A stretch of 64,000 nucleotides of DNA from Amphiscolops sp. MND2022 (Eukaryota): the NCBI GenBank assembly GCA_964187785.1, contig OZ076411.1, positions 76,198,001-76,262,000 on the forward strand. The letters run 5' to 3'. Below, in pieces: positions 21,190 through 44,991 of this stretch. The position numbers and the translations under genes are program-made. The stretch's first letter is position 1. Every line of letters begins with the position of its first letter. The notes below the pieces were generated by a model, which ran no database searches, was not told the origin of the DNA, and saw nothing but the letters and a program-made list of their open reading frames with translations.

Positions 21190-22551
21190 AATAATCGAGG
21201 CACATTTTGTAATCTAAACCACTCTGTAGTACAAAGAGTGAGACAATGTACGGTCGTATTAACCAAGCAGATTTTCAAAAAGTATTCTGCCAAGTGATCA
21301 AATCGGCCAAACGACTCTCGGCAATATGACCAAGCAAAAGTTCCTTTCACCACTCCAAACCATTATTCAGAGTTCCGGAATTTTTCTAGGAGTTGATTGG
21401 AGAATTGTTGCTGAAAACAAAGGAATGCAATAACGATTGCGAATAATTCCTGAATTACGAGTTTTTGTGTTTCAATTACATTTTCGATTATCAATCTAAC
21501 AATTACTTACATTTAGTGCTAGGATAGCGATTATCACGACAGTTTCACAACACATTTCAGATTCAGGTGAGGGGACACAGGGAGAAATCGAGCAGGAAAT
21601 TCATGTCATTCATCAGCCAAAGACTGAATGGAAAAGAAAGGACAGTTGTAAGAACCAAGAAGTAGGAAGGAACTTTTTGGCAGAATCTAGAAATGGCCAA
21701 AGTACGTTTGGACAAAATTGTATCAAATGTTCAACTTTTATACAAGCTTCTTGTAACGGAACGACAAATCTTATCAATCATTTGAAAAGGTGTAATCTGA
21801 AAACTTCAAAACTGAGTGGGCAGTCGTCAGTTAAAGCAATGTTTCCATCAACAAATGCTCCGTCAAGGCATGGTTTGAGAGAAGTTGCAAAGCTGTTATA
21901 CGTGGACAATATTCCAATGACTGAAGTTGTAAAGTCCGACACTCTGCAAAGTTTATTTCCATATTGCGGATATCATGATAATAACTACGGCAGTTTGAAA
22001 AAAGAACTCCACAGTGAATACGACATGGTTGTGAAAAAGTGCTTCCTGGGTGAAAGAAAGGCCATAAATCGGTCTTCCCGTGTTGGCGTTTGACAAATGG
22101 ACTGCATTTGTTAACACAGAATACATCGGAATTCACTTATATACAATGAAAACAAGCTACTGTCTTGTACTTGTGCATTTTACCGGTTTCTGGAGAAATC
22201 AAGAGAAAGGAGAATTAATTGCTGGACGACTTCAGATTTTTGGAATAACCCTGGACGACAAATGTTATCATTTTATTCATTACAGACAGTGGTTCAGATG
22301 TTTAAAAAATGGTTGAGAATGTTGGCGGTTTTCATATGAGCTATCTTTTTGGAATAAGCAAGACCCATTTTAAGGCCGACTGTCACCACAGCACCATAAC
22401 AGAAATGTTTTCTTGAATAAAAACTCTAAACATATTTAAGTACTGGATTTAGCATTTTCTTGTAAAGAATTTCGTTAAATGTTGTTGATTCAATTACAAT
22501 TTCAAGTATTTGGGATCTAATTGAACTAATTAGCAATTACAATTAAATCAC
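21190..22551 (+). mobile_element. hAT-superfamily transposase remnant, copy A
   Basis: BED finger CIKC...CNGTTNLINHLK (ORF 21677-22093), LAFDKWTA (first catalytic Asp region), FITDSGSDV (second Asp region), CAATTAC-type subterminal repeats. Confidence 0.75.
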
Positions 22552-22872
22552 TAAGACTTTAGGAATACTAAAGCATGTTGTATCAATCAAAATTAAAACA
22601 ACAATGAAAGTTGAGTTAAAATTATTGTTATTAACCGCCAAGTCAAAACTTGATCACACAAACTTCAAAAATGACTCATTTTATGATATGAATAGCAAGG
22701 CCTTTTCGAGAGTATTTTTACCGATATCGGAGAAATATTTCCAAAATATAAAATATTTGGCATGTCCGGGAATCGAACCCACGCCGGTCAAGTACCGGCT
22801 TTGTATTCTACCGATAGGCCAAGCTGCCTTAATATTTGTTTGCTTTGAATTAACGATATTGCGACCGCAACA
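22552..22872 (-). repeat. 3' LTR of BEL/Pao element (TGTTG...TTA)
   Basis: Starts right after the PPT, ends at the TSD, matches 31370-31690. Confidence 0.92.
22758..22828 (-). ncRNA. tRNA-like Pol III cassette inside the 3' LTR
   Basis: 71 nt GGCAGCTTGGCCTATCGGTAGAATACAAAGCCGGTACTTGACCGGCGTGGGTTCGATTCCCGGACATGCCA followed by AATATTTTATATTTT; B box GGTTCGATTCC, A box with one change; imperfect cloverleaf, so not a functional tRNA. Confidence 0.65.
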
Positions 22873-23022
22873 TCCTCCGGGCCCAAGAAAAAAAGGTTTT
22901 ATAGTGCAAAATTTTTTTCTTTTTAAATGTTTTGTGAAACATGTTTTTACATGAAAATTATTTTTTTATACATGTTGATACATGAAGCATAAATGAAGGA
23001 AGTGGATGAAGCAGAGCATTGT

Positions 23023-26000
23023 TTATTCGGGAAGGGGAAGGACGGGAGCGAGTTTGATCACTGGGCGTACAAGGTTACCAGATGCTGTTCTGACTTCAGC
23101 GGACCTGGCGACGGCGTCTGTGCCGAAGTTAAGCTTTACGACACGAGCTAGTGGATAGTACCCTCTAGGTGATGTCGGTTCAACAATCCACACGAGGTCT
23201 CCGGTATTCAGATCTCTGTTTGAATGAGATGACCACTTCGAACGGCGGTTCAGAGTGGGAACGTATTCTCTTAACCACCTGCTCCATACTATGTCGGAAT
23301 AAGCTTGCGCTCGAGCGTAACGTTTGCGATGGTCGACGTCTGCATGCTGATGCGAAGGCAGTACTGAACTTGAAGTTCCATGTAGAAAATGATTTGGAGT
23401 CAAGGCATCCAAATCGGTCGGATCGGCACTAGCAGGTACTAACGGTCGTGCATTCAAACTTTGTTCCACGAGGCAGAACGTGGTTGCAAGAATTTCATCT
23501 GTCAGACGTCTGTTTTCGAGGACAGCGTAGAACACGTGCTTGAAACTACGTACTAAACGTTCCCATACACCTCCATGGTGTGGAGCACTGGGTTGGTTAA
23601 ATTTCCACTTGATTCGTTTCTTGACAAGTGCTTCAGCGAGGACCTGTTGATTCCAGTTTCTGACGTTCTGTAACAGTTCTTTGTCACTCGCTACAAAGTT
23701 GGTGCCATTGTCTGACCAGAGAACTGATGGGGTGCCTCGTCGGGCAGCAAACCGTTCAATTCCCATCACACAACTACTGGTGTCCATTGACGGCACAACT
23801 TCAAAATGGACGGTCCGAGTAGTCAGACAAGTAAAAGGAATCCCCAGCGTTTTTCAGTAGAACGTTTCACGGACACGTAGAAGGGACCAAAGTAGTCAAT
23901 TCCTGTGTTGCGGAATGGAGGTTCTCTGTATGCAAGTCTTTCCCGGGGAAGATCGGACATCATGGGAGCTAACGTTTCAGCCTTGCGCTTACGACAAGTG
24001 ATGCACCTGGATACAACTGATCTCAAGGTTGGTCTCAATTTGACGATTGCGTATTCCTGCTGGATCAAAGTCCTTAAGTATTCAACACCCTGGTGGCATT
24101 GGTTGATATGAAAGTTCTCCAGGAACCGTCGAACAAAAGGATGACGGCTATCCAGTAAAATTGGGTGTTTCATGTCAAACGAGGCAACATCTAGTTGTTT
24201 TGTGCGACCAGAAGTTCGCAGTAAACCATTAGGTCCAATGAAAAGGGAAAATTCAACAATTTTAGAAGACTTGCTGAGGGGGAGTGACTTCAACAAGCAT
24301 TTCTTTTCAGTGTTAAAAGACTCGAGTTGTACCAGATAGAACAATCTCTTTTGGGCATTGTCGAGTTCAGTTGGGTCTGTAATAAATCCAGTTTCAGTGC
24401 GCTTGGATTCGTTCTTGGGAAGGAGTCGCAACATGTAAGCCACAATGCGCAGAAACTTCTCGTACGAACTGTACTTCTGCCATTTGAAGGTTGCTGCAAT
24501 TTCGGTTACTGTTGCGGTGATTGTAGTACACTGATGTTCTTTGGTTTTGATAACTTTATTGGAATCAGCGCCTTCATTGAGCTTCACTTTTTGACCAAAT
24601 TCTTCTGGGAGTTTGAAAGGGAAGTCGGATGTTTTTAGAAAGTCTGGTCCTGTCAGCCAACAACTGTTCAAAAGATCAGTTGCAGACATTCCACGTGTGC
24701 CCGTATCAGCCGGATTGTGAGCTGTAGGGACGTAGTGCCACTCATCAACAGTTGTTAAGTCAAGAATCTCGCATACTCGGTTCGCAACAAAGGTGGGTTG
24801 CTTTTCCAAAGAAGTTAACCACTGAAGCACAGTTGAACTATCGCACCACATGAAAGTTCTGTCTATCTTCAAAGACAGTGCACGGAGGACCTCGGCGCGA
24901 AGTCGTGCTGCAAGTAATGCGGCTTGTAGCTCTAACTTTGGAACAGTTAGTGCTTTCATAGGAGCCACTCTTGCTTTTCCAAAGACGAAAGCCAGCTGTG
25001 TCACAACACCGTTGTCATTTATTAGTTTTCCTCGCAAGAAAGCGACTGCGCTGAAAGCATCTTGTGAGCTATCACCAAACACGTGCAGCTCAATTGTTTC
25101 AACTGTTTGACAGAAGTAACTTCTTGGTATGGTAATTTCATTCAAAGTTGACAACTCTTTGCTCCATTCCAAGAACTTTGTTACAATGTCGTCTGGCAAG
25201 TTGTCGTTCCACTGCTGGCCACTAAGCCTCCAAATGTCTTTCAAAAGCAGGCGCGCTTTGATGGTGACCGGCGCAACGAGATCAATTGGGTCGTATACCG
25301 CGGATACCAAACTCAGAACAACCCTTTGAGTGACATCTTGGTCGGTGTTTGGACTTGTTCCTCTGCTAACAACTAGGGTGTCTGTTGAGTGATTCCATTT
25401 CATTCCAAGAACGTGCGAGAATTTCTCCGCAGTCGGAAACTCTTTCTCTTCTGTGGTTCTGCTGTCGCTGTTCGGATCCACTTCGATGGGGATGCTTGGT
25501 ACATTAGACACAAACTTTGTCAGTTTAAACCCCCCCAAAGCGAGCATTTTAACAAGATCCTTTGCTTTGTTAGAGGCTTCGTTAGCTGTTGGACTTGATT
25601 CGAGGTTATCGTCCATATAAAAGTTGTTGTGAACGCTTCGTGCTGCATCTGGGAAGTTAGCTTGGTTATCTGTGGCAGTTCGTTTCAGAGCGTAGTTAGC
25701 GCATGTTGGCGAATCTTTAGAGCCGAAAATATGCCGAACATACTCGAAAACAGCAACTTCAGCTGCTGGGTGCTCCCGCCACAAAAATCGAAGTGATGGT
25801 CTGTCACGTGGGATAACTCCAACTTGGAGAAACATTCCTTCGATGTCCGCAGATACAGCAAAAGGATATTGACGGAAACGGAAAAGAATGTGTATTAGGC
25901 TCTGCAGCAAATCTGGTCCTGCTAGAAGAGCACTGTTCAGGGACTGACCATGAAATTTTGCGGCTCCATTAAGAACCCTACGGACTTTGCCAGGCTTGTG

Positions 26001-29000
26001 AGGATGCACGACCGGATGGTGCGGTAAATACCATTCTCGGGGCTGGTCTACTTTAAAATAATCAGTTTTGTCCACTTGAACAATATAGCCTTTCGAGAAA
26101 TCGTCGCTAATTGTTTTCGTGTAACTGGCTTTCAAATCGGCAACTTTTTGAAGACGGCGCTCTAGCGATTTCAGTTGAATAAGTGCAGAAACATAATTGT
26201 TCGGTAAACAACTTTCGTCGTCGGCCCACATCTTACCCACTTGGTATCGGGACCCATCGTGGTATGTTGTTTCATCAAGTATCTTTGTCGCTCTCGCGTC
26301 GGTTGCAGAACGGGAATCCACTTGTTTGTACGCGCCGTACGACTCAATGTCGTACCAGCTTCGGAGTCGGTCCGAGAAAGTACAATCGTGCTCTTTCTGA
26401 GTAACAGCTTTGAAGCATGTCGAAAATAGACCCGTGGTCGACGGAAGGGGACCACTCAGTACCCAGCCCAACGGTAAACGGACGGCAACTGGGGTATTTC
26501 GGCGGTCGGATTCGAAATACTCCAGTGGGCGGAAAGCGTGGAAAACGTCCTGACCAAGAATCATTTTCACATCTGTGTAGCTGTACTTCCTAAGAGCGAT
26601 TGGTTCTAAGTGTGGATAGCGAGTCTTCAAATCATCTACGTCAATCACATCATTTCCAATAGTCAATTGATCTCGCACATAAGGTTTAACAGTAAAGGAA
26701 GAGCAAGAGCCACCCGAATGAACCGGTGTCAACTTGAACTCGACCATTTGAGTGTCAACAACCTTGTTGGAGTTAATTCCGTGTACAGTCAGTTTAGTCG
26801 GAGTGCCGCGCACGTCAAATTTGTCAGCTAGCTCGGAGGAAATCCAAGAATGGCTACACGCTGGGTCGCACAAAACTAAGACTTTTGCAGATTTCTCAGA
26901 AGTTTGCACTTCTACTTCCGTTATTTGTTATAATCCTTTCACATCAGAGATGGAAGGGAGGCATGAGGTGACTTCGTCTTTCTTTTGGATCGCTGTCGTT
27001 ACGCTACAAGTAGTTGCTTCACTATTGCCCGCTTTCCCAGATTCAGATTTTCTCGGGACAATCTTCTCTGCACCATATAGCAAAGTGTTGTGCGTACTTC
27101 CATCTTTGGTGCATTTGCGTGGCTGGGGGCAATTGCGGAAAGAGTGTTGTCCATTAAAGCATGAGAAACAAAGTTTGTTCTCGGCAACAACTTTCGCTCG
27201 TTCTGTTGGAGTCTTCTTTCTGAACACTTGACATCGCCACAACGGATGCTTATCTTTGCAAACTACACAATTAACCAATTAACTTGGAATTTCTGGGTTG
27301 ACGGCTTGGTTGCGAAGGTATTTTAGTGGAATTTGTTGTTGCAGCGAACACTTTAGAATTGGTCTTGGTTTTCGTTACGTTTCCGGTTGGAGTTTCTTCA
27401 ACTTTTGGTTTTCCTGAGGAAGCTTTCATCCTCTCGTGAGCTTCGGTTTTGTCCTTCAGCCAATCATTGAAGTCAATCAGAGTCGGTCGGCTCAAATCTC
27501 GCTTCACCGTATACATTGACCACCCTTCTTTCAAGTTCGGGGGAAGCTTTTGAACCGCTTGACCGAGCAATGAAGCACTCGAAAGATCTTGAACGTAGTT
27601 CAGAGATCGGAAAACACCAACCAAGGAGCAAATTGTAGCTGCATAACTTATGATGCTTTCGCTGTTATGCATTTTCACTGGAGGAACATTCGCTAATTTG
27701 TCCAAGTAGGCACTGACCACAGTCTGTGGTTGGCCAAATTTTCGTTCAAGAGTCTTCAGTGCGTCCTTGTACATTGTCCCACAGTACGCAAACTCAGCAA
27801 TTGCTGTTTTGGCTTTTCCAGTAACAAGTGTTTTCAAGTAAGTGAGTTTCACGTCGTCTGTAAGTGAAGAAGAATCAATGGCACTCTTGAACTGGCCGAA
27901 CCATTCATGCCATTGAAGAGGGTCGCCATTAAACTGTGCCAGTTTCCACTCAGGAAGATGGTCTTTCTTCGTCGAACTCAAAAGCTGTGCAAGGTCTTGC
28001 AATGTGAAGCTATTTACAGACGGTTGTGGCAAAGTAAACGAACTAGCAGGTACAAAAGGAGGGGCAGTAACACTGGGAAACGTTTTTACAGTTTGAGGTA
28101 CACCACAGTTTGTTGTCGATGTTACCACAGCAGTCGGCTGCACGTAGTAAACAGTTCCTCCATTCGTTATTGGGAAAACTTGTGCTGTAGATAAGACACT
28201 ATTGTTGGATGGATTGACTGTGGGTAAGCTGGTAGCGGGGGGTGGTACTACAGAGGTGGTGACTGCTGATTGTTGCAAGGATTTGGAATCCGGAAAACTC
28301 CAGGCAGACAAGTTAGGTAAAATGTGATTTACTGGAAGTGTGACTATCGGATTAGGTCGAGGCTGAGCTATTGTTGGTGCTGAAGTGATACTTACTGAAG
28401 GACAAGGATGTTGCAAAGTGCTAGCATTGTTCAAAAATAAACCAGTAGCAGCGAAGTTAGTAGCAGTTAAGTTAGTTTGACCGGGGAAACGCGGAAGCTG
28501 GCCAGGTAAACTAGCAAACGTGTTGTTAGGGTGGTTCAAAGACTCAGTTGTTGTAAGCGACAGTGGAGTCGTACCTGTGGTGTTTTCCGTTTGGGGCGGA
28601 ACATTATTTTGCACCGTAACAAATGTAGGCGCTGATACACTAGTGTTTTCAATTGATGGAGATGCAGCTAAGGCCAATGGTTGCGTACCAACGATCTGTT
28701 CCTGATTCGATTCAACAATGGGTGCTTCAGGGGCACGTTCATTGGTAGCAGATATCAAAGTGGGAGAATTATTAACCCAATTGTTAACTCGGGTTGACTG
28801 ATGTTCGTGGCTCTCCTCACTCAAAAGTGATAGCGTCTCCTGGAATTCTTCATTTGTCGCCGACAGATCATCTTGAAGTTCTAATTGAATCAGTGTCGCC
28901 TCAGCCAGTTTTTTGCGGTTCTCTTCCTGCAAGGCGACTCTAAGTGCAAGTTCTTCCTTGAGACGCTCTTGTTCTTGCTGCATTCGTTTGATTTCAAGAT

Positions 29001-29507
29001 CTTGCTTTTGCTGAGTCAGTCGGAGTGTAGCTTCATTTTGCTTCTCAATTTCTTCACGCCTTTGTTTTGCAAGGAGTAGCTCTTTCTGCCGTTGACTTGA
29101 CGTCTTTGATCGAAGAGAGCTTGAAACTTTACTAGACTTTGTCTTGTTCGTCGATAGAACTATTGAAGTTTGCGAAGCGTTGTCAGTTTGCAGACATTTC
29201 TCCAGATAATTGCGAGCTTTCGTCAGTATTTCATCATTTCTGACAATAACGTCGTTTAACCACTTTTCCAAGTCTGGCTTCACTGACTCTGGGTTGGTTG
29301 ATTTGTTGGCTAAGTCTAGGAGTTGTTCGTTTTTTGCAAAGGTTTTAGTCATAGCTTCCTCACACGAGGTGATTAATCGATCAACGCGAACACGTCGTTC
29401 GGCATTTCCAACGGCGTCATTGAGTTTTTTTGACGTTGTTGAGCTCCGCTTTGGCTTTAGCGCGGCTATCATGCAACTTGGCGACTTTCTCTTGCATCCT
29501 ATCAGCC
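23023..29507 (-). pseudogene. BEL/Pao gag-pol polyprotein with about four lesions
   Basis: Likely start MADRMQEKV at 29507; LPEWKLAQFNGDPLQWHEW, knuckle CVVCKDKHPLWRC/CFSCFNGQHSFRNC, VLCDPACSHSW, YLPHHPV, VSADIEGMF, NFYMDDNL, LHVFGDSSQDA, VPKLELQAA, TGIDYFGP, WSDNGTNF, APHHGGVWER. Lesions: extra A ~29430, insertion ~27275, TAA at ~26928, 1-nt deletion ~23845. Confidence 0.95.
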
Positions 29508-29949
29508 ATTGAATGTTTTCCTAACTTTTTGGATCAATGTAGTGTGTTATTAGGACACGAATTGTAGTGTTTCCAGCACTAAATTATGTTCAAAACAGCA
29601 GAATCACTTACAGAACATCAACCAGACAACTAAATCCGGACACAATACTGAAAGTTAACTATGCGGTTGTCTATTAATGAAAATTCCACAGTGACAGATC
29701 AAAAGAAGATACTACAAAATTTACAAGTACAAAATCTACGAGTTTAAAATGTTGCGGAGTATGTTGCGTTGGAAAGACGGTTAATTTATTTGTTTTGGTT
29801 CAAAAATAGGCACTAAGGAACTACGAGGACGGTATAAGACAAGAGTAATGAAGAACACGCAGTTATGGTATTGAAACGGTCGTTTTGAACGTCAACCGGA
29901 CAGTCAAGTCCGGACACAGTCCAAAACTTGGAGGAAAGTTGTTGCGACT

Positions 29950-30591
29950 TCAACCTGACAATGAAGTCTGGACACTGTCACAACAACAGTCCTTTGGGGA
30001 GGAAGAAACTTCACTTTGATTTGAAGCCTTACGGGCACGTTTACTTGGTCGCTCAGGGCGAGTTTTGGCTGTAATCTGCGCTAGATCGGTTTCTTTTCGG
30101 AGAATGATGTCCAAATACTTGAGTTCAAACTCAGGTCTTTGGTGTATTGCCTTCAATTCGTTCAAAATTTTTGGATCATTTTGTTTTCTTGTCGAAAAGA
30201 AATCGGTTTCAATTCGGAAAACAGGAATGCTTTGCGTTTTTAGAATATCAGAAATGTCGGGCGTTCTAATTCGGTGGCAATACACAAGAGCCCGGAGTTT
30301 GTTTTCTAGAGATCGTAAAATATCTAGTAATTGAGAAACAGATAACGCTCGAAAATTGTTGCTTTTATGTTTTGACAAGCTATTGTTCAGCACATCGTGC
30401 CAAATCACGATCTCATTTTTTTGCAAAATCTTTTAGCAACAAATATTGGACAATTTTTTGCGGGTTTTTGCTTGATTATTCAAACTAAGGCCCGGAATGG
30501 TGTAAATTTTTTCTTTTAGGAAAGAATTTTCTTCAGTTGGTAAAGTCTCCAAAGCATGATGCAATGAGCTCGCACCCAAAATAAACACCAT
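29950..30591 (-). pseudogene. SGNH/GDSL-hydrolase-like ORF (two frameshifts) between PBS and gag
   Basis: Joined frames: MVFILGASSLHHAL (block I-like Ser), IYTIPGLSLN (block II Gly), IVIWHDVLNNS (block III Asn), ELKAIHQ (late His), basic tail RPSKRARK. Fold call is by motif order only. Confidence 0.5.
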
Positions 30592-31350
30592 TACATTTTA
30601 CAATACAATACCTTTTTTTGGAAGATTTTCTTTTTTGACTACTCACAAAGTTAGTAGTTCTTTTTTCAATGCAAAAATTTGTTGCATTATTCAAGCGTTT
30701 TTTTTCAAAGAATTGTTCGGACACTTCACGAAAGATGTTTTTTTTCGAATTGAAACATTGTTGTGTTTAGTCAAAGGTTCCTATCAAAGGCCCTGCTATT
30801 GAAGGAGCAACGGTTTCACAAATGACATCACAAAAAAAGGTAGTTTAAGTTTTTTTTTGTTGCTAACGACCTAGGGGCTCCAGGATTTCTGGGCTATCAC
30901 TGGGTATCTTGGCTGGGGGGTTACATTCGTCTGTATAGGCGAGGGGGCGTTCCCTAGTCAGTTTTCAGTTCAGCTGGTAGTGAAGTAAAACCTCTCGATT
31001 CCTGCTGTCGGTTAGTTAGCTGCGAATTGTAATTGAAATTGAAGTGGTACCGACTTGGCTGATATTTTTATTCACATTGCCGGATAGTAATTGCACGTGA
31101 GAGGATAAATTGCTGTTATTGAAAGAGCAAATCACAATGTTCAATCGAAATAGGAAAAGTAAAAAGGAAAATGAGGGGGCTGTGAGCTGTAAATCAAGCT
31201 GAAATATACTGTGACAAATATAATCAACCGATTTGCTTTTGTAGAGGTGCAAGCGTCAAACTTTGGCAGTCTGAAGAGAATTTCTTGAACTAATCAACAG
31301 CCAATTCAAGATTCATGAATAATAGGCACTTAGTTTTTGACAATTTCGTG

Positions 31351-31367
31351 CCTCTCAATGTCCACCA
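31351..31367 (-). promoter_or_regulatory. Probable primer-binding site of the 22552-31690 element
   Basis: TGGTGGACATTGAGAGG begins 2 nt after the 5' LTR end; cognate tRNA not identified. Confidence 0.55.
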
Positions 31368-31369
31368 TA

Positions 31370-31690
31370 TAATACTTTAGGCATACTAAAGCATGTATTA
31401 TCAATCAAAATTAAAACAACAATGAAAGTTGAGTTAAAATTATTGTTATTAACCGCCAAGTCAAAACTTGATCACACAAACTTTAAAAATGACTCATTTT
31501 ATGATATGAATAGCAAGGCCTTTTCGAGAGTATTTTTACCGAAATCGGAGAAATATTTCCAAAATATAAAATATTTGGCATGTCCGGGAATCGAACCCAC
31601 GCCGGTCAAGTACCGGCTTTGTATTCTACCGCTAGGCCAAGCTGCCTTAATATTTGTTTGCTTTAAATTAACGATATTGCTACCGCAACA
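31370..31690 (-). repeat. 5' LTR of BEL/Pao element
   Basis: Same length and about 97% identity to 22552-22872; flanked by the TSD. Confidence 0.92.
31576..31646 (-). ncRNA. tRNA-like Pol III cassette inside the 5' LTR
   Basis: As 22758-22828 but with consensus A box TGGCCTAGCGG at +8; B box GGTTCGATTCC; TTTT 4 nt downstream. Confidence 0.7.
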
Positions 31691-31695
31691 ATCAC

Positions 31696-34718: not shown

Positions 34719-35113
34719 CCCCTAGTGAACTAAATAAAGAAGCGAAGCGGAACGACGTGCCATTCGGCCATGCTTCAATGTTGGTACTTGGCATAAGAGC
34801 GGAGCGATCGAACCACACAACAAATATGCCAAAAAGTTTTCGTTTGTTGTTGTTTCCTAAAGATTTTGGTAAAAATTCAATTCAGTTTTGTTCTGAATAG
34901 GTTGTTTTTAGCCATTGTTGCTTGAGTTAGAATGGACTTGGTTTAATTTTGTGGTCAATTGGCCTAAAATTTGGTGGCCAAATGACCCGACGAATAATTT
35001 AGGTCAAATGTCTTAAAGCCAAGTGACTTGTGAACGCTCCCTCCGCCAAGTAGCAACATTGAGGTTTGGCTATAAGGATTGTCGCTTCGCTCCTGCATTT
35101 AGGGCACTAGGGG
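34719..35113. mobile_element. MITE with ~85-bp imperfect TIRs (CCCCTAGTG...) and TA flanks
   Basis: 34717-34805 is the inverted counterpart of 35036-35115; interior has AAGCCAA(A/G)TGAC-type repeats; lies among further such repeats from ~34540. Confidence 0.6.
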
Positions 35114-35645
35114 TATAGGAGCATAGCTGATAACGTTAAACAATAATTCCGACACGCGTTTTCATGTTGGTGAATTCAATTGGATTTCAATTTTCAGCTA
35201 TTCAGATTGCAGTATAAACAAATATTCTGCTCGCTCCCATGTTTCCTATGTTGGTTGGATTTTTTGTCTGCCGCCCGGTCAGGGGGCAACTTATGAAAAA
35301 AGAAGCGTTTTTAAAAAAAAACCCTGATTGATGACGACTGTTGTTCCATGAGTTGTAAATTAGAGTCAATCTAATTTGTTGCGATTTGCAACTTAGAATC
35401 ATTCTAATTAGTTGAATGTTTGAAATAAAATCAATCTAATTTGCTGAAAAGTGGGAGAGCAAGTTAAAGTTTTAACTCGACTGAATTTTACTAAAGTGAC
35501 AGAAACTGTGGGAAATGAGAACAAAGTATGAACAAATTACGAATTCAATGACGTACACATTTTTGCATGTGAGTGTTAGTCAGCATGAATAGTTTGAGAT
35601 TCGAATGTTTAGCTTTCATCTGCTTGCCTCAGTTGTGCTTCAACA
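34766..35645. repeat. ~880-bp composite repeat; second copy is 43250-43604 + 44167-44410 + 50711-50995
   Basis: About 90-95% identical once the insertions in copy 2 are removed; both copies end GTGCTTCAACA. Confidence 0.9.
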
Positions 35646-35697
35646 TACCGCCCGCCTTGAAGGATCGGTAGATTCTTTAATGATTTCAGATTTTGCA

Positions 35698-36906
35698 ATG
35701 AACCCAAAAGAAACGGTGGACGCGGGTGCGGATGTTAGTGACAGCGAGGAGGGGCCTTAAACAGTCCCAGAATAGAGTCGTGTTGAGGAGGTGTTCGCTG
35801 AAGTGGAGCAGCGTGGAGGACTGGCGTGGCGACAGACGGGAATTCTTCCACTGTTGGTGGTCTCCATCTTCAGCTGGGGGAACAAATTTCCAACTGTCCC
35901 AACGGTGGTTCGAGGCGCTGCAGCAGACAGTCTCTGTGATTTGGCTGCCAGAGTCAAGTCACTTTGGAATAAGGGTGCTTGTGCGTACTCGGACTTTTTG
36001 CAGTCAGCAGGAGCCACTGTTACAAGTCGCAGCAAGGGGAGGGACAACCGGGGTTTTGAGGGCAGCAGAACGTGCTCGTTTGTGTTGCCTGACTCGGCTG
36101 TCAATTGTCTTGCTCCGGACTACATCAAAGTTGGATCCAAGGCACTTTTAGCAGCGAAGGGGCCTTGGATATTATGTGGACATATTGAACCAGGTGGGGG
36201 AGAGAGTATTGCCAAGCTATCGTCCGGCCGCAAGCTGTGGATCATAGCTACCAATATTGGCTCTTCCAGATTCCTTATGTCCATTCAAAGCTTTGATCAT
36301 TTTTATCAGCTCTTGATGGGTGCAAAGTCAGAACGTTCGAAAACGCATAAGCATAACAAAAGAAACATTCGTGGTTTGCGGTTTCACTTAGCTGAAGAAG
36401 GTGACGTGTTAATTCAGCCTGCTTTTTATGCGCATTGTGTTCTAACGGGTCGAGCTTATGCTGCTGATGGTTCTACTCGATTGGCACTTGTGCATGGTTG
36501 GGAGGGACTGGATTTGCGCCACACTAGGCGAGCTAGCAGTGTTTTTAACAGTGTCAGTACGGGTTGCGGAAGAGGCTATATCTCACAGTGGTTGAAGAGG
36601 TACGGAAAGGATAAGTTGTTGTCACTTCTGACTGTCAGAGACTGGAAGCTTGCCCTGGCAGCCTGGCGTAAGTTTCAAGTTCAAGTCAGTCTGAACCCAT
36701 CAATTTCTCTTTCCCGTACTGAGACGTCTGTTAGATCTTTCCTCTCTCGGAGTGATGTACTGGAACACTTTGAGGCCTTCGTTAACTATGGTTTCAATTT
36801 GGAAGCTCACCTTCCAGTTCCCAAATTGGAGCTGTCAGCGAAGTCCCGAAGAAAGGAAAATCGCTTGCTGGCTAACTTGAAAAAGGGGATCAGAGTTTAC
36901 GTCTGA
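35698..36906 (+). pseudogene. JmjC-like dioxygenase, copy 2 (371-codon open frame; two stops near the upstream ATG)
   Basis: KALLAAKGPWILCG-HIE-PGGGESIAKLSSGRKLWII ... LAEEGDVLIQPAFYA-H-CVLTG; ATG at 35698 is in frame but followed by TAA (~35758) and TAG (~35773); no introns evident. Confidence 0.7.
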
Positions 36907-37817
36907 TGAAGAATTGGATCTTCCTCTTGCTGCAGTTGTAGAGTACATGCCTCGTGACGAACTTTGAAATTTTGTTACTTCCATATGAACAGAATAATTG
37001 AATGAATTAGTCAGTTTATTTTTCAACCATTTGAATGAGTCACGAGTGCATGTATGAATTTCCATAAGAAGTGAGTTGAACTGAAATTCCATACTGATGA
37101 ATTGATAATGAACCAGTTGGACCGCAAGCCACGTCTGCTAGATTATGGGGATTGAGAGGTTTGAAATAACTATAATTTCGAGAATGATAATGAAACCAAA
37201 AGAGATCGTCTGCTACTGATAAATATAAATGCGAACATCCACATTTCGGTAGGTTGTATAAGTAAAATATCCAATATTCCATTTGATGATAAATAAATTT
37301 CATTGGTCGGTGCCTCTGAGCTTGATCTGCCGAAGCCCCGCCAAAGCCTGCATAGCAGCAACAAACCATGAAACAGCTGGTGATTGTAGGAAATCAGAAA
37401 GTACCAGAAAAGACCAAATGTAAACAGGTGAAACGAAATAAAGTGAATAATTGTCAATTCTTATGTAAATTATTGGGGTGAACGTGAAGTCAAACGGCCA
37501 TAACTTTAGATATAAGTCGAAATCGAAAATTCGGCATCCTAGAGCTTTTCACAGAGATGCCAGGGCGCCATTTAGAGGGGTTCATATATCCGTAAATTGT
37601 ACCAACAAAAGTCGGGACCGAGAAAACATCAAGTATTTCGGTATTCCGAAATAGATGTAAGACACATCAAATTGCTATAACTTCAAATAGAGACCAAAAT
37701 CAAAAATTCAGCTCCCAAGACATTTCCACAGAGATACTAGAGCGTCATTTAAGGTGGTCCATGCGTCTGTATAATGTAGCAACAAAATTCGGGACCGAAA
37801 AAGTTGTCTGAGTAACA

Positions 37818-40800
37818 TGCCCCGATTTTGCTCTGATATACTTGAATTCTCTTAAGTTAGAACTGTTGCATCTCTGACCAAATCAGGACCTGATATAGCT
37901 TGCGGGGGATCTATGGGGAGCTTTCTAAGCTTGACTACTGCCCGCATCAGGGTTCCACTGGTTGTTCTGACTTTTGCAACACGATTTATCTCATCATTAC
38001 CGGAGTAAAGATCTATTACACGAGCCATTTTCCAGTGCAAAGGAAGTTGATTGTCCTCAGCAATGAAAACTAAATCACCTTTTGCGAATTCTGGACCGCT
38101 TGTGAGCCATCGTTTTCGTATTTGTAGCGTATCCAAGTAATCTTGATGCCAAGACTTCCAGAATGGAGATTTCAGTTTTTCCAGAAGCTTCAATCTGACA
38201 TTGAGATGTAAGTTTTCATCACTTTCACTTGCGGTCAGCGAATGTAAATCGTTCATCCCTCGTCCCAGTATAAAGTGAGCTGGAGTGAGCGGCTGTAAAT
38301 CATTGGGGTCAGCAGACATTGCAGTGAGAGGTCTAGAATTTGGAATTCCTTCGATTTGAAAAACGAAAGTGTTCAATTCATCATGAGTCAAGATTTGCGT
38401 ACCCACACAACGCCTCAAGTGTCGTTTCATTGATTTATTAGCTGCTTCCCAGAGTCCTCCGAAGTGTGGAGCTCTAGAAGGAATAGTAATCCATTCCATT
38501 CCACGACTATTGATGTAATTTTTGATTGAATTTTCATTTGTGTCTTTACTGAAAAGACTTTGAACTTTCGCAATGTTATTTCTGGCTCCAATGAAATTGG
38601 TACCATTGTCACTGAAAATCTTTTCTGGTGGTCCACGCCTTGCAACGAATCGTTTCAAAACTGCGATGCAAGAATCTTTTGTCAAACCAGTGTCTAATTC
38701 TATGTGAACAGCCTTTGTGGAAAAGCAAACGAAAACTGCAATCTATATCTTGTTGTCTGGCTTGGTGATAATAGGTCCTACCAAATCAATACTAACATTA
38801 ACGAAAGGTTTGATAGGCGTAACTCTCTCGGAAGGTAAGTCAGCCATAAGTTGAGCTAGAATTCCACTAGAGAATCGACTACATTTGACACAATTCCGGA
38901 TAAATTTGTTGGCAACAGTTTTACCTCGAATTATCCAGTATTATGATCTACTGGAGTTGAGCGTTAGCTGCCCCCCGCCATGAGGTGGTAGCTTCATGAA
39001 ATTGTCGTAAAATCAGTACTGGCAGATGAGAATCAGGGTGAAAGACATGAGGAAATTTTTAATACTCGGCAAAAGAACTTTTTGATAATCTACTACCAAC
39101 GCGGATTGTACCAGTATCTCCATAAAAAAAAAGACATAAGTTGAGAAGCTTGCCTTTTCTGCTTACTTTCTACCCAGCTTTCAAACGAAAAAAAAATCTT
39201 CTGTGAAGATTTCTTTTTGGTGAAGTGAAATGATGAGAAACTTCGCCTTTGCGCGTCTTGAGGGACTAAGACTCAAATGACTATTGACCTTTTGAAGTAG
39301 GTCAATAGCTAAATGCACGTTTGCTGCTACACGAATGACTTTGCTGAGAGTGCTGTTTCGTTTAATGTCAAATAGAGGTTCCACGTCTTGAGCGGCAGTG
39401 ACTGTAGTAGTGTTGAATTTCTGCTTTTGTTCTGTTTGTACAATTTTTCGCATTTCATCATCGATTTTTGAAGATAATTGAGGCCAAGTGTCCTCTTGAT
39501 GCAAGAACCAATTGGGACCGAACCACCAGAAGTTATTCGTGAGTAAGTCTTGGACCATCATTCCTCTTGATGCACAGTCTTCCGGATTCAAGTTGGACTT
39601 GACGTGATACCAATTTTCTCGAAGAAGAATTTGCTGAATTTCGGACACTCTATTGGCGACGAAACAGGTCCATGTTCGTGGTAGCTGCGAAAGCCATTGG
39701 AGAACTATCGTGGAATCAGTCCATCCATAGATAGTTGGGCTTGGTAGATTTGTGAGTGCAAAGACTTCCTTGATTTTGACAAGTAGCTTGATTCCAAGAT
39801 AGGCATCACAAAGTTCCAATCGAGGCAAAGAGACTGTTTTGATGGGTGCAACCCGTGTCTTGCTTGCGACGAGTTTCGAGACAATATGCCCGTCAATATC
39901 TGTCATCCGTGCGTAGATGACAGCGGCATATGCAATTTCAGAGGCATCTGTAAACGAATGAAGTTGAACATTCGCGATTTTCCCTTGAGGAGAGATACAT
40001 CGCTGTAGCTTGAGTTCTGCCAAATTGGGCAATTAATCTTTTATTTGTTTCCATTCATTCTGAATTTCTTTAGATACAAGTTGGTCCCATTCAAAACCTT
40101 GTACCCAGAGTTTTTGAAGTAAGACCTTAAATCTGATGACAATGGGAGAAAGCCACCCAACTGGATCGAACAACTTCGCTGTTTCTGAAAGTAACTGTCG
40201 TTTTGTCACGTTTCCTTCAATTGTTAAATTTGAGTAGAGACTGAAGTGATCTAAGTTGGGTTTCTGTGACACACCCAGCGTTTTTATTTGGTAATTGTTA
40301 TCCATGAATTTATCTTGGTTGGTGCTTTCTCGTAGATTTTCTGGCAAAGACAAGGTGATTTCATGATGACTATAAGCCCACTTCCGTAGCTCAGATCCAT
40401 AATTGCTCAAAACTGCGCAAATTTCATCTACTTTTGTTTTTGCATCTTCAATTGAATCGGTACCAGATAAATAGTCATCAACATAGAAATCGTTTTTTAT
40501 TGATTGAGCGTTATCTTTGTCTTTACACAGATTGGCGACTTCTACAACACTTCGAGTTGAATGAAATGCCGAGGAAGCAATTCCATAGGTAACACGAGTC
40601 TTTCGAAACTGCTTGATGAAGTCTGTGTTTGAATCCCACCATAAAAGTCTGTGAAAAACTTTTGCAGCCTGTTCTAATGCAATTTGTCGGTACATTTTTG
40701 CGATATCTCCCGATAGAGCAACTTTATGCAACCGAAAACGAATAAGAATTGAAAACAAATCTTGTTATACTGTTGGTCCTATCATGAGAGAACCATTGAG

Positions 40801-43250
40801 TGAATTGCCAATACTGGATTTGGCAGATCCGTCAAATACCACACGCAACTTTGTGGTTGTTGAATCCTCCTTGTGAACACATTGATGTGGCAGGAAGTTT
40901 AATTGATGATCAGGTTTTACAATTTCATTGTCAGGAACAGGTTCAAGATGATTGAGATTGATGAATTCGTGATTAAAATCGGTGTATTTTTTTAAGATTT
41001 GGCTTTGAATTTAGACGTTTTTCAAGATTTAGAAAACGACATTTCGCTTGAGTAAAAGTATCTCCCAATGGAGAACTGTCAGGTTTGAAAGGCATACCAA
41101 CATGAAATCTGTTATCTTCGATGTAGGTAGTTTCCTTGAAATGCTTCTCACAAGCAATTTCTTCATCACTGTACCTTTTTGCATCAGGGACTTCCTCAAG
41201 CTCCCAAAATTGTTTCAGGTTGAAGGAGTTGGTGATACATAGTGAAGTGGTGACGACATTTGATTGATGGTCTCTTGTAACACCAGATGCAGTCCAGCCA
41301 AATATGGTGTTTCTGAAATGAAGACCATTGTCTTCTTGAAATTTTCCGTCAAGGAAGATTTGCTCTGCAATAACAGAGTCCAAGATCATTTCCACTTTTC
41401 TGGGTTTATTGAATTCAGGGTCTGCTAAATCCACTGACCTTAAATGGAAACATTTGGCAATACTGAATTCGCGTTCAGGTAGTACTTGGGTAAGGCTGGG
41501 TAAGACATATGCATTGACTGTAATGGCACTATGACCAGAACTTGGTTTCAATCGCAAACTAACACTACCGGAACGGTAAGTTTTGGAAACATTTCGAATT
41601 CCGTTGATGGTAAGTTTTTGTTTATGACATTTCAAATTCATCCGCTGCACTGCGGACTCTGAGATCAAACTGATCTGTGATCCGGTGTCGATCATGGCTC
41701 GACACATGGTGATTTTTGAAGAATCACTTTCAACGGGAACCATTGCAGTAGGAACGATGCCAGAGGCAATTCCAGCAGTCGCCTGGTTTGTGGTAAATGA
41801 ACCAGAAACAGCTCCTTCTGGTGCATCAGGTAAGTGTAACAACGAGATGTGTTTTGAATGGCATGTTTTGCAAGTATGCTTTGACTTGCATTCCTAAGTG
41901 CTGTGACAAAAGTTCAGACAATTAAAGCATAAATTCGACGTCCAAACGAGATTTTTGCGGTCCTTAGGACTCATGTTAGTGAATTTCTTGCAAGAATAAG
42001 TTCTATGATTTTCCGAACAACAAGGACACTTTTCAACAATAGCCTTGTAGTTTTGAGTAGGTTGAGATTTCTCTTGAGAATTACTTTTAAGATGTGGACA
42101 TTCTGAAGCCTTGGGAACTGATTTCGTGGCTGATTCAAGAGCTTGAGCTCTTCTGCCAATAAACTCTCGTAACTGCGTCAGGGTTTGTGGTTTGGTACCA
42201 GGGTAGTCGTTTTCCCAAAGAGCCCTCGAAGCTTGATCCAACCTTTCTGCAATCATTCGAACACCAATGAAGTCTTCTAAATTGTCTCCGAGTTCTAGAG
42301 CCTTGATCGCCATCAAATTTTCTTCGAAAGTGACAAACAATTTGCGTAACTCAGATGTCGAATTGCCCGTCATTGACTTCAAATCGAAGATAACATCTAA
42401 ATGACTGTTAAGAATCAATCTAGGATTGTTATAGCCGTCAACAAGCGACTTCAAAGCATTTGGATGATTCGAGCTTGATAACGGCAAGTGAGCAACTAAT
42501 TGAAGAACTTCGTTGATAAGTGAGGTTTTCAGATAATTGAATTTTTGGATTACTGGAATGCTGGGGTTATTATCAACTGAGGCCATAAACGGAGTGTACG
42601 CCTTTGATCTAATTCATTAGGTCTAATGGAATTAAATCAAACTTTCAGATCTAATTTAGGTCCAACTTTAGGTCTAACTTTCAGATCTAATTTTATCTAA
42701 AATACTTAGTCTAACCCCTTTATGATCTAATATGTGTTCTGAAAGCGAAAATATAATGTGGGGCATGTGCGATGTATGCACGCTCGCCCTCACCGTCGCA
42801 AAGATCAGCTCCACTACGATCGCTCCGCGATCTCCGTTCCCGCTAGGTCTTTGCTCCTGTTCGACCTCGCTTAGCAAGATGGGAATATAGGCGGCCCCAA
42901 GGGGCCGCGGGGAACTAGAGGAATTGGGGACATATCCGAGGCACGTTTTATACTTCATATCACTTTTTAGTTTTAGATCCTCATTGACTTATTGTTTTTC
43001 TCAAATTAGATCAACTTAGAAGAGATTTTTAGACCTGATTATTTAGATCAATTTATTTAGATCTCAGTTTTGCTTCCTCTCTTAGATCTATTTCATTAGA
43101 CCTGATTCCACGCACCTGCCATAAACTGCTCATAGAACGGAACCCACTTCTTGTATTCACCATTGAATTTCGGCAGGTCGAATTTGGGCATCTTGATAAG
43201 GCTGCTGTGACTAATGGATGTGGCGTTTGTTGGTTCTGGAAGGGGTGCTG
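37818..43250 (-). mobile_element. Degenerate BEL/Pao gag-pol, 5'-truncated by the composite repeat
   Basis: MPKFDLPKFNGEYKKW, QKFNYLK, CPCCSENH, AMIDTGSQISLI, GDIAKMYRQI, FYVDDYL, LHSFTDASEIAYAA, LPRLELC, FSDNGTNF, APHFGGLWEAA, LTPAHF; PPT-like AAATCGGGGCA before TGTTAC at 37817. Confidence 0.94.
42591..43117. mobile_element. Non-autonomous DNA transposon (9-bp TSD, MULE/Merlin-like) inserted in BEL gag
   Basis: TSD GCCATAAAC at 42582-42590 and 43118-43126; removal restores gag ...FYEQFMASVDNNP...; weak TIRs; many TAG(A/G)TCTAA subterminal repeats. Confidence 0.85.
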
Positions 43251-43604
43251 GCCATGCTTCAATGTTGGTCCTTGGCATGAGAGCGGAGCGATCGAATCAC
43301 ACAACAAATATGCCAAAAATATTTCGTTTGTTGTTGTTTCCTAAAGATTTCGGTAAAAATTGAATTCAGTTTTGTTCTGAATAAGTTGTTTTTAGCCATT
43401 GTTGCTTTAGTTAGAATGGACTTGGTTTAATTTTGTGGTCATTTGGCATAAAATTCTGTAGCCAATTGACCCGACGAATAATTTAAGCCAAATGTCTTAA
43501 AGCCAAGTGACTTGTGACCTGGCTCCCTCCGCCAAGTAGCAACATTGAGGTTTGGGTATAAGGATTGTCGCTTCGCTCCTGCATTTAGGGCACTAGGGGT
43601 ATAA

Positions 43605-44158
43605 GGTAAATGGTCACTTGGCTTAATGCCATTTGGCTTAAAGTCAGTTGGCTTAATACAATTGGTCACATGGCTTAATTTTTTTAAGCTAGGTGTCTCG
43701 GGTATTGGTCACTTGGCTTAAAGTCATTTGACTTAATACCACTTAGTTGAAAACTTGTGGCAGATTTTGTCGAATTTATCTTGATAACGTAGTCAGCGTA
43801 TTATTATAACATATATCAAGTACCCCTCGGATATGTCCCCATTTCCTCTAGTGCGCTGCGGCCCCTTGGGGCCGCTTATGTTCCCGTCTTGCTAAGCGAG
43901 GTCGAACAGGAGCAAAGACCTAGCGGGAACGAAGATCGCGAAGCGATCGTAGTAGGAGCTGGTCTTTGCGACGGTGAGGGCGAGCGTGCATACACCGTAA
44001 ATTCCCCTAGTTATGATATTTCCGGGAGTTGACATATTTGTTCCTTGAGTTGGAATGGAGTTGGCTTAATTTTGTGGTCACTTGGCTTAAAATTTTTAAG
44101 CCAAATGACTCGACGAAAAAATCAAGCCAAATGGTATTAAGCCAGGTGACTGGTAACC
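43605..44158. mobile_element. Non-autonomous DNA transposon (8-bp TSD, GGT termini, Merlin-like)
   Basis: TSD GGGTATAA at 43597-43604 and 44159-44166; TIRs GGTAAATGGTCACTTGGCTTA / GGTTACCAGTCACCTGGCTTA; empty site visible at ~35110. Confidence 0.85.
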
Positions 44159-44991
44159 GGGTATAAGAGCATAGCTGATAACGTTAAACAATAATTCCGA
44201 CACGCGTTTTCATGTTGGTGAATTCAATTCGATTTCAATTTTCAGCCAATCAGATTGCAGTATAAACAAATATTCTGCTCGCTCCCATGTTTCCTATGTT
44301 GGTTGAATTTTTTTGTCTGCCGCCCGGGCAGGGGGCACATTATGAATAAAGAAGCGTTTTTTACAAAAAACACTGATTGATGACGACTGTTGTTCCATGA
44401 GTTGTAAATTTTTGTCGAATTTATGACAGCGACTCACAATGGGCAGTAGTGACAAGTGGAGTGCCCCAAGGGTCAGTCCTGGGACCAATACTTTTCCTTC
44501 TTTACATCAACTCCATGTCAAATGGCGTAACATCCAAAATGTTCTACTTTGCTGATGACGCGAAAGTTTACAGAGCAATCACCAACCTAGCAGAGCAGGA
44601 AGAACTACAAAAGGATCTTTACAAGTTGAAGAAGTGGTCCAATGGCGGTGATCTCGAGTTCAATCTGACAAAATGTCACCAGCTTAAACTGAGTTTAAGA
44701 ACAACATCATCAAATAGAACGTAATCCCTGGATGGTACAACACCCTTGACAAGGGTTAACAGTGAGAAAGACCTCTGAATTATAATCGATACAAAACTCT
44801 CCTTTCACGAACACATTCCAAAGAAAACAAAAACAGCTACTGGCATTTTAGCGATCATTAAAAAAGGCTTCCTGAATGTTATTGCAGGAATCATCAAAAC
44901 ACTGTACAAAACTCTCGTTAGACCTCATCTAGAGTACGCCAACCAGTCCTGGAAACCGTATCTGAAGAAACATATATTGAAGTTAGAAAGT

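Follow-up and report, generated by a model that had tools for sequence, protein, structure and literature searches.

A tRNA-derived unit with RNA polymerase III promoter boxes in the long terminal repeats of a BEL/Pao retrotransposon

The BEL/Pao element and the unit in its LTRs

We analyzed a stretch of 64,000 nucleotides (nt) from the genome of Amphiscolops sp. MND2022 (GenBank assembly GCA_964187785.1, contig OZ076411.1, positions 76,198,001 to 76,262,000 of the forward strand; hereafter, the window), which carries on its minus strand a long terminal repeat (LTR) retrotransposon of 9139 bp (22552-31690). The element is complete in structure, with a coding part that is now defective. Each of its LTRs contains a unit of tRNA size, read in the sense of gag and pol. 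A preliminary description of this DNA, made from the letters alone, had singled out the unit as a tRNA-like transcription unit of RNA polymerase III (Pol III) and listed its position, boxes, ends, hairpin and downstream TTTT; we located every one of these features in both LTRs (Table 1).

Table 1. Positions of the retrotransposon, its LTR units and the neighboring features in the window
Feature	Position	Strand	Remarks
5' LTR	31370..31690	(-)	321 bp; begins TGTTGCGG
3' LTR	22552..22872	(-)	321 bp; differs from the 5' LTR at 9 positions (97.2% identity)
Target-site duplication GTGAT	31691-31695 and 22547-22551		5 bp, perfect; flanks the LTRs
Primer-binding site TGGTGGACATTGAGAGGC	31350..31367	(-)	2-nt spacer after the 5' LTR
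Polypurine-type tract GGGCCCGGAGGA	22873..22884	(-)	Adjoins the 3' LTR; same in all clade families
gag open frame	27274..29520	(-)	DUF1759; Pfam and frame map
pol	23026..27278	(-)	Protease, reverse transcriptase, RNase H, integrase, DUF5641; tblastn, frame map and Pfam
In-frame stop in pol	near 26928-26930	(-)	tblastn with protein P0004, frame map
Frameshift in pol	near 23838-23844	(-)	tblastn with protein P0004, frame map
Type-A unit, 5' LTR	31646->31576	(-), gag-pol sense	70-71 nt; starts 44 nt into the LTR
Type-A unit, 3' LTR	22828->22758	(-), gag-pol sense	Starts 44 nt into the LTR
A box, 5' LTR unit	31629-31639	(-)	TGGCCTAGCGG at +8
B box GGTTCGATTCC	31587-31597 and 22769-22779	(-)	Present in both LTRs
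TTTT runs, 5' LTR	31568-31571 and 31561-31564	(-)	Candidate Pol III terminators
TTTT runs, 3' LTR	22743-22753		Repeat of those in the 5' LTR
CTTGCTAT and AP-1-like motifs	31475-31520	(-)	Downstream of the unit
Second BEL/Pao element	34766-44410	(-)	Distant, fragmented
LTR-like repeats of the second element	34766-35361 and 43250-44410		The latter ~565 bp longer
Copia-type element	44992-50238	(+)	RVT_2, rve, gag_pre-integrs; between 233-bp direct repeats, 95% identical
Atlastin-like open reading frame	51295-52881	(+)	528 amino acids, uninterrupted; GBP domain, 3.6e-87

The element is a member of the BEL/Pao group (Belpaoviridae). Pfam searches matched DUF1759 (3.6e-16), the Pao peptidase (Peptidase_A17, 1.1e-40), RVT_1, Integrase_H2C2, rve and DUF5641 (3.6e-22), and the domain order, LTRs, primer-binding site (PBS), polypurine tract (PPT) and target-site duplication (TSD) all agree with this assignment. 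The search for homologues returned 533 at E<=1e-30; those listed carry precomputed Pao-type Pfam domains and include relatives with an intact Pol or Gag-Pol protein of 1470-1762 amino acids (aa). By comparison, pol of the window element is broken by an in-frame stop and a frameshift, and its PBS has 2 mismatches relative to TGGTGGCCATAGAGAGGC, the usual form in its clade. With the LTR pair, PBS, PPT and TSD all located, the earlier claim that these are real LTRs was upheld, and the unit inside them has therefore been copied through reverse transcription.

The unit ends in GGCA and TGCC and encloses a perfect 6-bp hairpin (GCCGGT/ACCGGC). The A box of the 3' LTR (TGGCCTATCGG) differs from that of the 5' LTR by a single G-to-T change. 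The two TTTT runs lie 5 and 12 nt past the end of the 71-nt unit (8 and 15 nt from its last C). First-order Markov simulations predicted 0.15 pairs of A and B boxes at tRNA-like spacing per 64 kb, as against 2 observed, and both observed pairs belong to the two copies of one LTR. Throughout the window and its related loci, a small sample of ~325 kb centered on transposable elements (TEs), such pairs were nearly confined to the LTRs of this BEL/Pao group. The boxes and their tRNA-like spacing bear out the view of the unit as tRNA-derived and equipped with type-2 Pol III boxes; read in this way, the unit is a decayed tRNA copy in which the predicted type-2 promoter boxes are intact.

The unit in related elements

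Our sample comprised 12 related loci (L001-L012), with one copy per family, and in each of them the LTRs were located and then read. The closest Pol proteins (89-96% identity) and the families at 68-75% identity all came from a single long-read assembly in ENA (ERZ25074608), and the relatives at 53-56% identity belonged to two further ENA assemblies and to the acoel Symsagittifera roscoffensis. Acoels were the only named organisms with TE relatives among the matches listed. Families with at least 68% Pol identity have in common the PPT, an LTR that starts with TGTTG (TGTTGC except in L004) and a PBS similar to TGGTGGCCATAGAGAGGC, a pattern from which the PBS of L001 departs after TGGTGGCCAT. 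Scans of Joint Genome Institute (JGI) metagenome contigs gave 0 matches to the exact pattern and, when guided by protein, no relative.

A unit, intact or decayed, lies at a comparable LTR position in 7 of 11 related loci, including families at 70-75% Pol identity. Its presence is thus no accident of a minor sublineage, a possibility that the preliminary description had raised, since it recurs at one and the same place of the LTR in several sister families. The window element is 90-93% identical in nucleotide sequence to the copies at L001, L002 and L008. Type-A units are carried by the window element and by L002 and L008, which belong to the same subfamily (the L008 copy is decayed). L001 and L012, with 88-92% nucleotide identity to the window element, have at the same LTR position a unit with a different core, type B. 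The same position is occupied by type C in L003 (70% aa identity), by type C' in L010 (75%) and by a shortened, degenerate remnant in L004 (71%). No unit is present in L009 (72%) or L011 (68%), in the LTR of L005 (56%) or in the Symsagittifera copy, L007 (56%). The most distant copy, L006 (53%, from another assembly), has a class-II-like unit, type D, which lies ~105 nt into the LTR.

Conservation across these types is concentrated in the boxes. Among types A, B, C, C' and D, pairwise identity is 90% for the B box, 60% for the A box and 41% for the other columns of the unit, and only 18 of ~5000 random pairs of 11-column blocks matched the conservation of the boxes. All five types have kept a perfect B box, and the spacing from A box to B box is 42-45 nt in four of them and 51 nt in type D. 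The parts that precede the B box are no more alike among the five types than shuffled sequences.

One such change of sequence can be followed within the sublineage of the window element, which is 92% identical to the L001 copy over 5.7 kb. When the type-A and type-B LTRs of these two elements are aligned, 41 of 44 positions are identical before the unit and ~98% in the 60 nt after it, as against 15 of 46 (the random level) in the core between +4 and the start of the B box (Fisher p = 1.5e-9). It is the 5' two-thirds of the unit that was replaced, in one block, with one breakpoint at AAGGC and the other at the T-arm/B box, a stretch common to nearly all tRNAs. The exchanged core again has its A box at +8 and the B box 42 nt further on. 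The simplest explanation for such a swap would be template switching of the reverse transcriptase in minus-strand synthesis, either onto a co-packaged tRNA or onto the RNA of another element with a unit. The original capture was probably made by the same kind of switch, in which the homology would be provided by the universally conserved sequence of the T-arm. That the unit is in sense agrees with switching on the minus strand and not with plus-strand read-through into the primer tRNA.

A further observation concerns the primer tRNA. The clade PBS, which can be read as TGGT-GGCCATA-GAGAGGC at the end of the 5' LTRs of L003, L004, L009 and L011, predicts a tRNA whose 5' acceptor strand is identical to the GGCCATA with which the type-C unit begins (7 nt, L003 5753-5759). 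Type B matches this strand at 5 of 7 positions and types A, C' and D at 1-3 of 7. The match hints at an origin of the 5' part of the unit from the primer tRNA, although a stretch of 7 nt is weak evidence.

Having these types at hand, we asked how much of a tRNA is left in them. Neither the window nor any related locus gave a tRNA call in ARAGORN at default settings or at 90% thresholds, and only inconsistent pseudo-calls appeared at 80%. Rfam scans at gathering thresholds had no match in the window, and no 5S match was obtained in the Rfam scans of the LTRs. With permissive settings, the window unit aligned over its full length, yet weakly, with the models of tRNA-Sec (18.2 bits) and mascRNA (15.9 bits, cut-off 42.5), as did the L010 unit with tRNA (RF00005; 18.3 bits, cut-off 29), all of them below the family cut-offs of 29-47 bits. 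In an E-value scan of L010 and L003 (49 kb) the weak tRNA match was lost and only chance miRNA-like hairpins were retrieved. The tRNA detection proposed earlier as a check on the unit has thus yielded no ARAGORN call and Rfam scores below threshold. The D and T stems are broken, with only 2-4 pairs left in the T stem; acceptor pairing is not retained between unit types; and the anticodon-like hairpin, preceded by 3 extra nt, consists of a stem of 6 bp and a loop of 5 nt. The minimum-free-energy folds of the five unit types included no cloverleaf, and their z-scores relative to shuffled sequence ranged from -1.2 to +0.4 (-0.42 for the window unit). A working tRNA gene that is spread by the element would account for the tRNA length, the A and B boxes and the downstream T run, but the ARAGORN and Rfam results, the broken stems and the wrong geometry of the hairpin make it an explanation of negligible probability.

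The same data bear on a role at the level of RNA. Every genomic RNA includes the U3 region of the 3' LTR, and the unit could therefore act there as a tRNA mimic: in packaging, in the binding of a host factor that recognizes tRNA, in processing by RNase P/Z (as in the MALAT1 mascRNA) or in giving rise to small RNAs that resemble tRNA fragments. Its sense orientation and location in U3 would suit a mimic, as would the T-arm sequence, which is its best-kept part, and the weak but full-length matches to the tRNA, tRNA-Sec and mascRNA models. We consider this very unlikely, however, given that all of these matches fall far below the family thresholds, that the unit has neither a cloverleaf nor a stability beyond that of shuffled sequence, and that so little pairing persists in the T and acceptor stems. 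Cleavage at the unit would, moreover, take R off the genomic RNA, and use of the unit as the primer is excluded by the lack of complementarity between its 3' end and the PBS.

Three specific candidates were tried and rejected. Self-priming was discarded because no type has a unit whose 3' end would pair with the PBS, whether or not CCA or the trailer is included. Processing of the RNase P/mascRNA kind was rejected as unlikely on account of the low mascRNA score and the lack of an acceptor stem. Integration beside tRNA genes, as in Ty3, was rejected after no tRNA genes were found in the flanks of any locus.

We also considered whether the unit exists as a free short interspersed element (SINE). 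Scans with the 70-mer, with the whole LTR and with relaxed A and B boxes retrieved no copy of the unit outside these LTRs in the window and 11 loci that make up the ~325 kb. This small sample therefore does not present the picture that the preliminary description had set against its own reading, that of an abundant free SINE found in only a minor LTR sublineage. The sole exception in the box scan was an isolated and degenerate tRNA-like stretch in L003 (5250-5335, minus strand), ~370 bp upstream of the element, which has a B box (GGTTCGAGTCT), is interrupted by a run of seven T and is unrelated to the LTR units.

Several of the related loci have peculiarities of their own. In the type-B 5' LTR of L012 (7920-8240) an unrelated 11-mer takes the place of the B box and T-arm, with both flanks intact; this element is truncated and has no 3' LTR within the locus. 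About 3.5 kb of the internal region of L008 (5731-12487) is inverted relative to the rest, and CpG transitions account for two of the changes in its type-A unit, in the B box and the hairpin. Repeats of 1.2-1.3 kb reach past the LTRs, into flanking or internal sequence, in L004 (3613-4920 and 14392-15704) and L005 (4334-5539 and 14413-15619), which suggests tandem or recombined elements that share an LTR. L005, which comes from a different assembly, also contains two direct repeats of ~380 bp (21950-22330 and 22920-23300), 970 bp apart and beside 28-nt tandem repeats. Each has a tRNA-like unit with A and B boxes in its middle, ends that are not TG..CA and no visible PBS, and the pair could be a tandem tRNA-related repeat or a miniature LTR element.

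A candidate Pol III module and the neutral alternative

We give roughly even weight to the reading that the unit is an accessory TFIIIC/Pol III DNA module in the U3 of an autonomous BEL/Pao clade. The rival explanations rank behind it in the following order: a neutral passenger, a promoter that serves short derivatives of the kind known as TRIMs (miniature terminal-repeat retrotransposons), the RNA-level tRNA mimic and the real tRNA gene. The use of Pol III is suggested by the sequence and by the precedent of two groups of TRIMs, Helenus and Cassandra. The unit would recruit TFIIIC, TFIIIB and Pol III to each LTR and act at the level of DNA. In types A and B it could give rise to a short sense RNA of ~80 nt that ends at the TTTT runs, and/or it could form a boundary occupied by TFIIIC immediately upstream of the region in which the element has its own Pol II promoter. 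A small-RNA source and a silencing barrier had also been proposed in the preliminary description, along with a tRNA-fragment decoy; all three are putative roles. A module of this kind would be an accessory that aids expression or resists silencing, and not an essential replication signal. The CTTGCTAT motif and the AP-1-like motifs (TGAGTCA/TGACTCA) downstream of the unit are conserved in elements with and without it (L001, L009 and L011) and probably belong to the Pol II promoter/enhancer in U3. We concur with the preliminary description that a 9-kb genomic RNA made by Pol III is unlikely, as the TTTT runs 5-15 nt past the unit exclude it in practice.

The history of the unit was examined in a maximum-likelihood tree of Pol, in which the nine copies from ERZ25074608, among them the families with units, form one clade (support 100/100). 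L004, with its degenerate remnant, and L009, which has none, are sisters (100/100), as are L010 (type C') and L011, again without a unit (88/95); L003 and the group of types A and B lie on separate branches. Types B and C are alike in their first 17 nt (13/17), and the 3' end of the unit and its flank are common to types C and C' and, likewise, to types A and B. These shared segments indicate that the units are homologous insertions, and most economically the unit would have been gained once, at the base of the clade, and then lost at least twice and decayed once. A direct repeat of CAAATATT brackets the unit, and a single motif of the CAAATATT type is present in L011. The repeat fits the original insertion or a duplication by template switching, and it also fits a precise loss between the repeats.

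Several findings weigh against a functional module. L009 and L011 are nested among families with units and have LTR pairs that are ~98% identical; the unit is therefore not required for transposition and is dispensable. L004 has LTRs that are 99.4% identical and contains only a degenerate stump, and the type-B copy L012 is without a B box. Resolution along the backbone of the tree is poor (supports of 42/21 and 60/77), and a single copy was sampled per family. In types C, C' and D the first run of four or more T lies 45-60 nt downstream, so that the predicted length of the RNA is not conserved. The preliminary description had put forward a test of whether the boxes are more conserved than the rest of the LTR. 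Across the unit types they are better kept than the other columns of the unit; among the type-A copies the unit is no better kept than the whole LTR (4/70 vs. 3.5%, and 9/70 vs. 10.6%). The latter result is the decay expected after insertion and speaks neither for nor against function. As for the pattern across types, it would be expected from selection on a type-2 Pol III promoter and equally from repeated capture of tRNAs. Because all tRNAs share these boxes, their conservation could reflect separate captures of different tRNAs instead of purifying selection in the LTR. Under either cause, something has maintained a boxed unit at this place of the LTR in several lineages. In favor of the module, the youngest LTR pairs are found in copies that bear a unit (100% identity in L001 and L006, 99.5% in L003 and 99.1% in L010).

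The serious rival to the module is that the unit is a neutral passenger, which we regard as possible though, on balance, doubtful. A retro-copy of a tRNA or the head of a SINE would have landed once in an ancestral U3 and been tolerated there, looking like a promoter by virtue of its tRNA origin and of occasional recombination with co-packaged tRNAs or elements with units, and of no benefit to the element. The CAAATATT repeat around the unit and the single motif in L011 resemble a filled and an empty site. The losses in L009 and L011, the degeneration in L004 and the missing B box in L012, without any indication of a halt in transposition, would be expected of a passenger, as would the absence of extra conservation among type-A copies; the insertion of a SINE into the LTR has in fact been proposed as the origin of LTRs of this kind (Kojima, 2024; PMC10886601). 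Against it stand the conservation of the B box above the other unit columns, maintained in lineages whose LTRs can otherwise hardly be aligned, the perfect B box of the five types at an A-to-B spacing within the working range, the exchange between types A and B, which restored the full pair of boxes and left no scar, and the lack of free copies in our sample. The accessory module is the reading that we carry into the comparison with known elements.

The window contains other features besides this element. The second BEL/Pao element has ~34% identity in the peptidase region and no unit with A and B boxes. A Copia-type element and an atlastin-like open reading frame follow on the plus strand. 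The latter, an intronless gene or a retrocopy, is 55-57% identical alike to the atlastins of molluscs, annelids, nemerteans, hemichordates and arthropods, and it shows the host to be a metazoan.

Comparison with known LTR and Pol III systems

The nearest parallel is Helenus (TRIMp3), a set of non-coding TRIMs of 311-1263 bp with tRNA-like LTRs known from fungi, six animal phyla and Selaginella (Kojima, 2024; PMC10886601). What is conserved in their LTRs is mainly the A box (TRGCY..YGG) and the B box (GGTTC); these LTRs usually contain no functional tRNA and have been read as carrying a captured Pol III promoter (PMC10886601). The same study noted tRNA-like parts in 'not a few' LTRs in Repbase and followed up the TRIMs only; it argued that an autonomous partner has to rely on a Pol II promoter and is not likely to have LTR sequence of this kind in common with them (PMC10886601). 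Like Helenus, the window element has tRNA-derived sequence with A and B boxes in each LTR, no functional tRNA, a PBS and a PPT, and it belongs to a group with several families per genome; Helenus LTRs reach ~320 bp. The two differ in that Helenus is miniature and non-coding and the BEL/Pao element is 9.1 kb long with gag-pol, and in that animal Helenus has 4-bp TSDs and a pairing with Gypsy, as against a 5-bp TSD and BEL/Pao here. Xenacoelomorpha are not among the reported hosts of Helenus. We found no report of a BEL/Pao or any other autonomous element with a tRNA-like LTR unit in the open-access literature. The earlier remark that no BEL/Pao equivalent was known can stand to that extent, with the amendment that tRNA-like LTRs have been published for the Helenus TRIMs. 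The feature is hereby extended from tiny non-coding elements to a full-size coding one.

The parallel raises the question of whether the Pol III promoter serves the offspring of the element and not the element itself. Internally deleted derivatives of the Helenus type would then parasitize the BEL/Pao family, with the autonomous element as their progenitor or as a partner that shares its LTRs. The presence of Helenus in six animal phyla and its supposed dependence on autonomous partners lend this some appeal, as do the 321-bp LTR, which is within the size range of Helenus LTRs, and the orientation of the unit, which fits Pol III read-in from the 5' LTR. However, no two LTRs with a unit were closer than 1.5 kb to each other in our sample, the TTTT runs of types A and B would halt Pol III inside U3, and the TSD length and Gypsy-matching PBS of animal Helenus do not agree with those of a BEL/Pao element. 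We therefore find this explanation improbable.

A bolder version of the module reading joins the two systems: the LTRs of autonomous BEL/Pao elements may keep a live Pol III/TFIIIC module by repeated recapture of tRNA sequence from the RNAs in their own particles, through minus-strand template switching at the invariant T-arm, and may be the source from which TRIMs of the Helenus type arise by internal deletion. The idea is prompted by the 5' two-thirds of the unit being unrelated between lineages while boxes, spacing and flanks persist, by the clean block swap in one subfamily and by the 7-nt match of type C to the predicted primer tRNA. We offer it as a speculation that is rather unlikely as it stands. 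It departs from the published model of Helenus origin, in which a SINE inserts into a TRIM, by deriving the TRIMs from autonomous elements through internal deletion.

Comparable promoters of a different class are carried by Cassandra of plants and Ajax of nemerteans. As with the unit described here, the internal promoter of a small-RNA gene lies in both LTRs and is propagated by reverse transcription; the promoter of Cassandra and Ajax is, however, of type 1, from 5S RNA, and the elements are non-autonomous; ours is a predicted type-2 promoter of tRNA origin. Cassandra is reported to be transcribed by Pol III, as cited in the Helenus study (PMC10886601).

SINEs derived from tRNA (SINE2) resemble the unit in their degenerate tRNA head, which keeps the A and B boxes without forming a cloverleaf. 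They are, however, free-standing, have a body and a tail of the long interspersed element (LINE) type and move by LINE machinery, in contrast to the unit, which is the size of a tRNA, lacks a tail, lies within U3 and is mobile only as a piece of the LTR. The similarity is a warning for the annotation of tRNAs and SINEs in such genomes.

Sites with A and B boxes are able to recruit TFIIIC and to serve as barriers or enhancer blockers, with or without the production of RNA. Insulators of this kind include the tRNA gene (tDNA) barriers and extra TFIIIC (ETC) sites of yeast and the boundaries formed by mouse B2 and human MIR SINEs. The unit shares their A and B boxes and is located just upstream of the presumed Pol II control region. 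Those insulators are host loci or SINEs, and the unit, with its predicted TFIIIC binding, is a built-in part of an LTR.

Pol III modules in LTRs (Cassandra, Helenus and Ajax) have so far been known only from miniature, non-coding elements. In this coding BEL/Pao clade, the candidate module sits in U3, has kept its boxes through a large turnover of sequence, has had its core swapped and has sometimes been lost. The clade thereby offers a natural series of presence and absence in which the effect of a TFIIIC/Pol III site in an LTR can be tested, be it a small RNA, a boundary against silencing or nothing, and a candidate origin for the TRIMs of the Helenus type.

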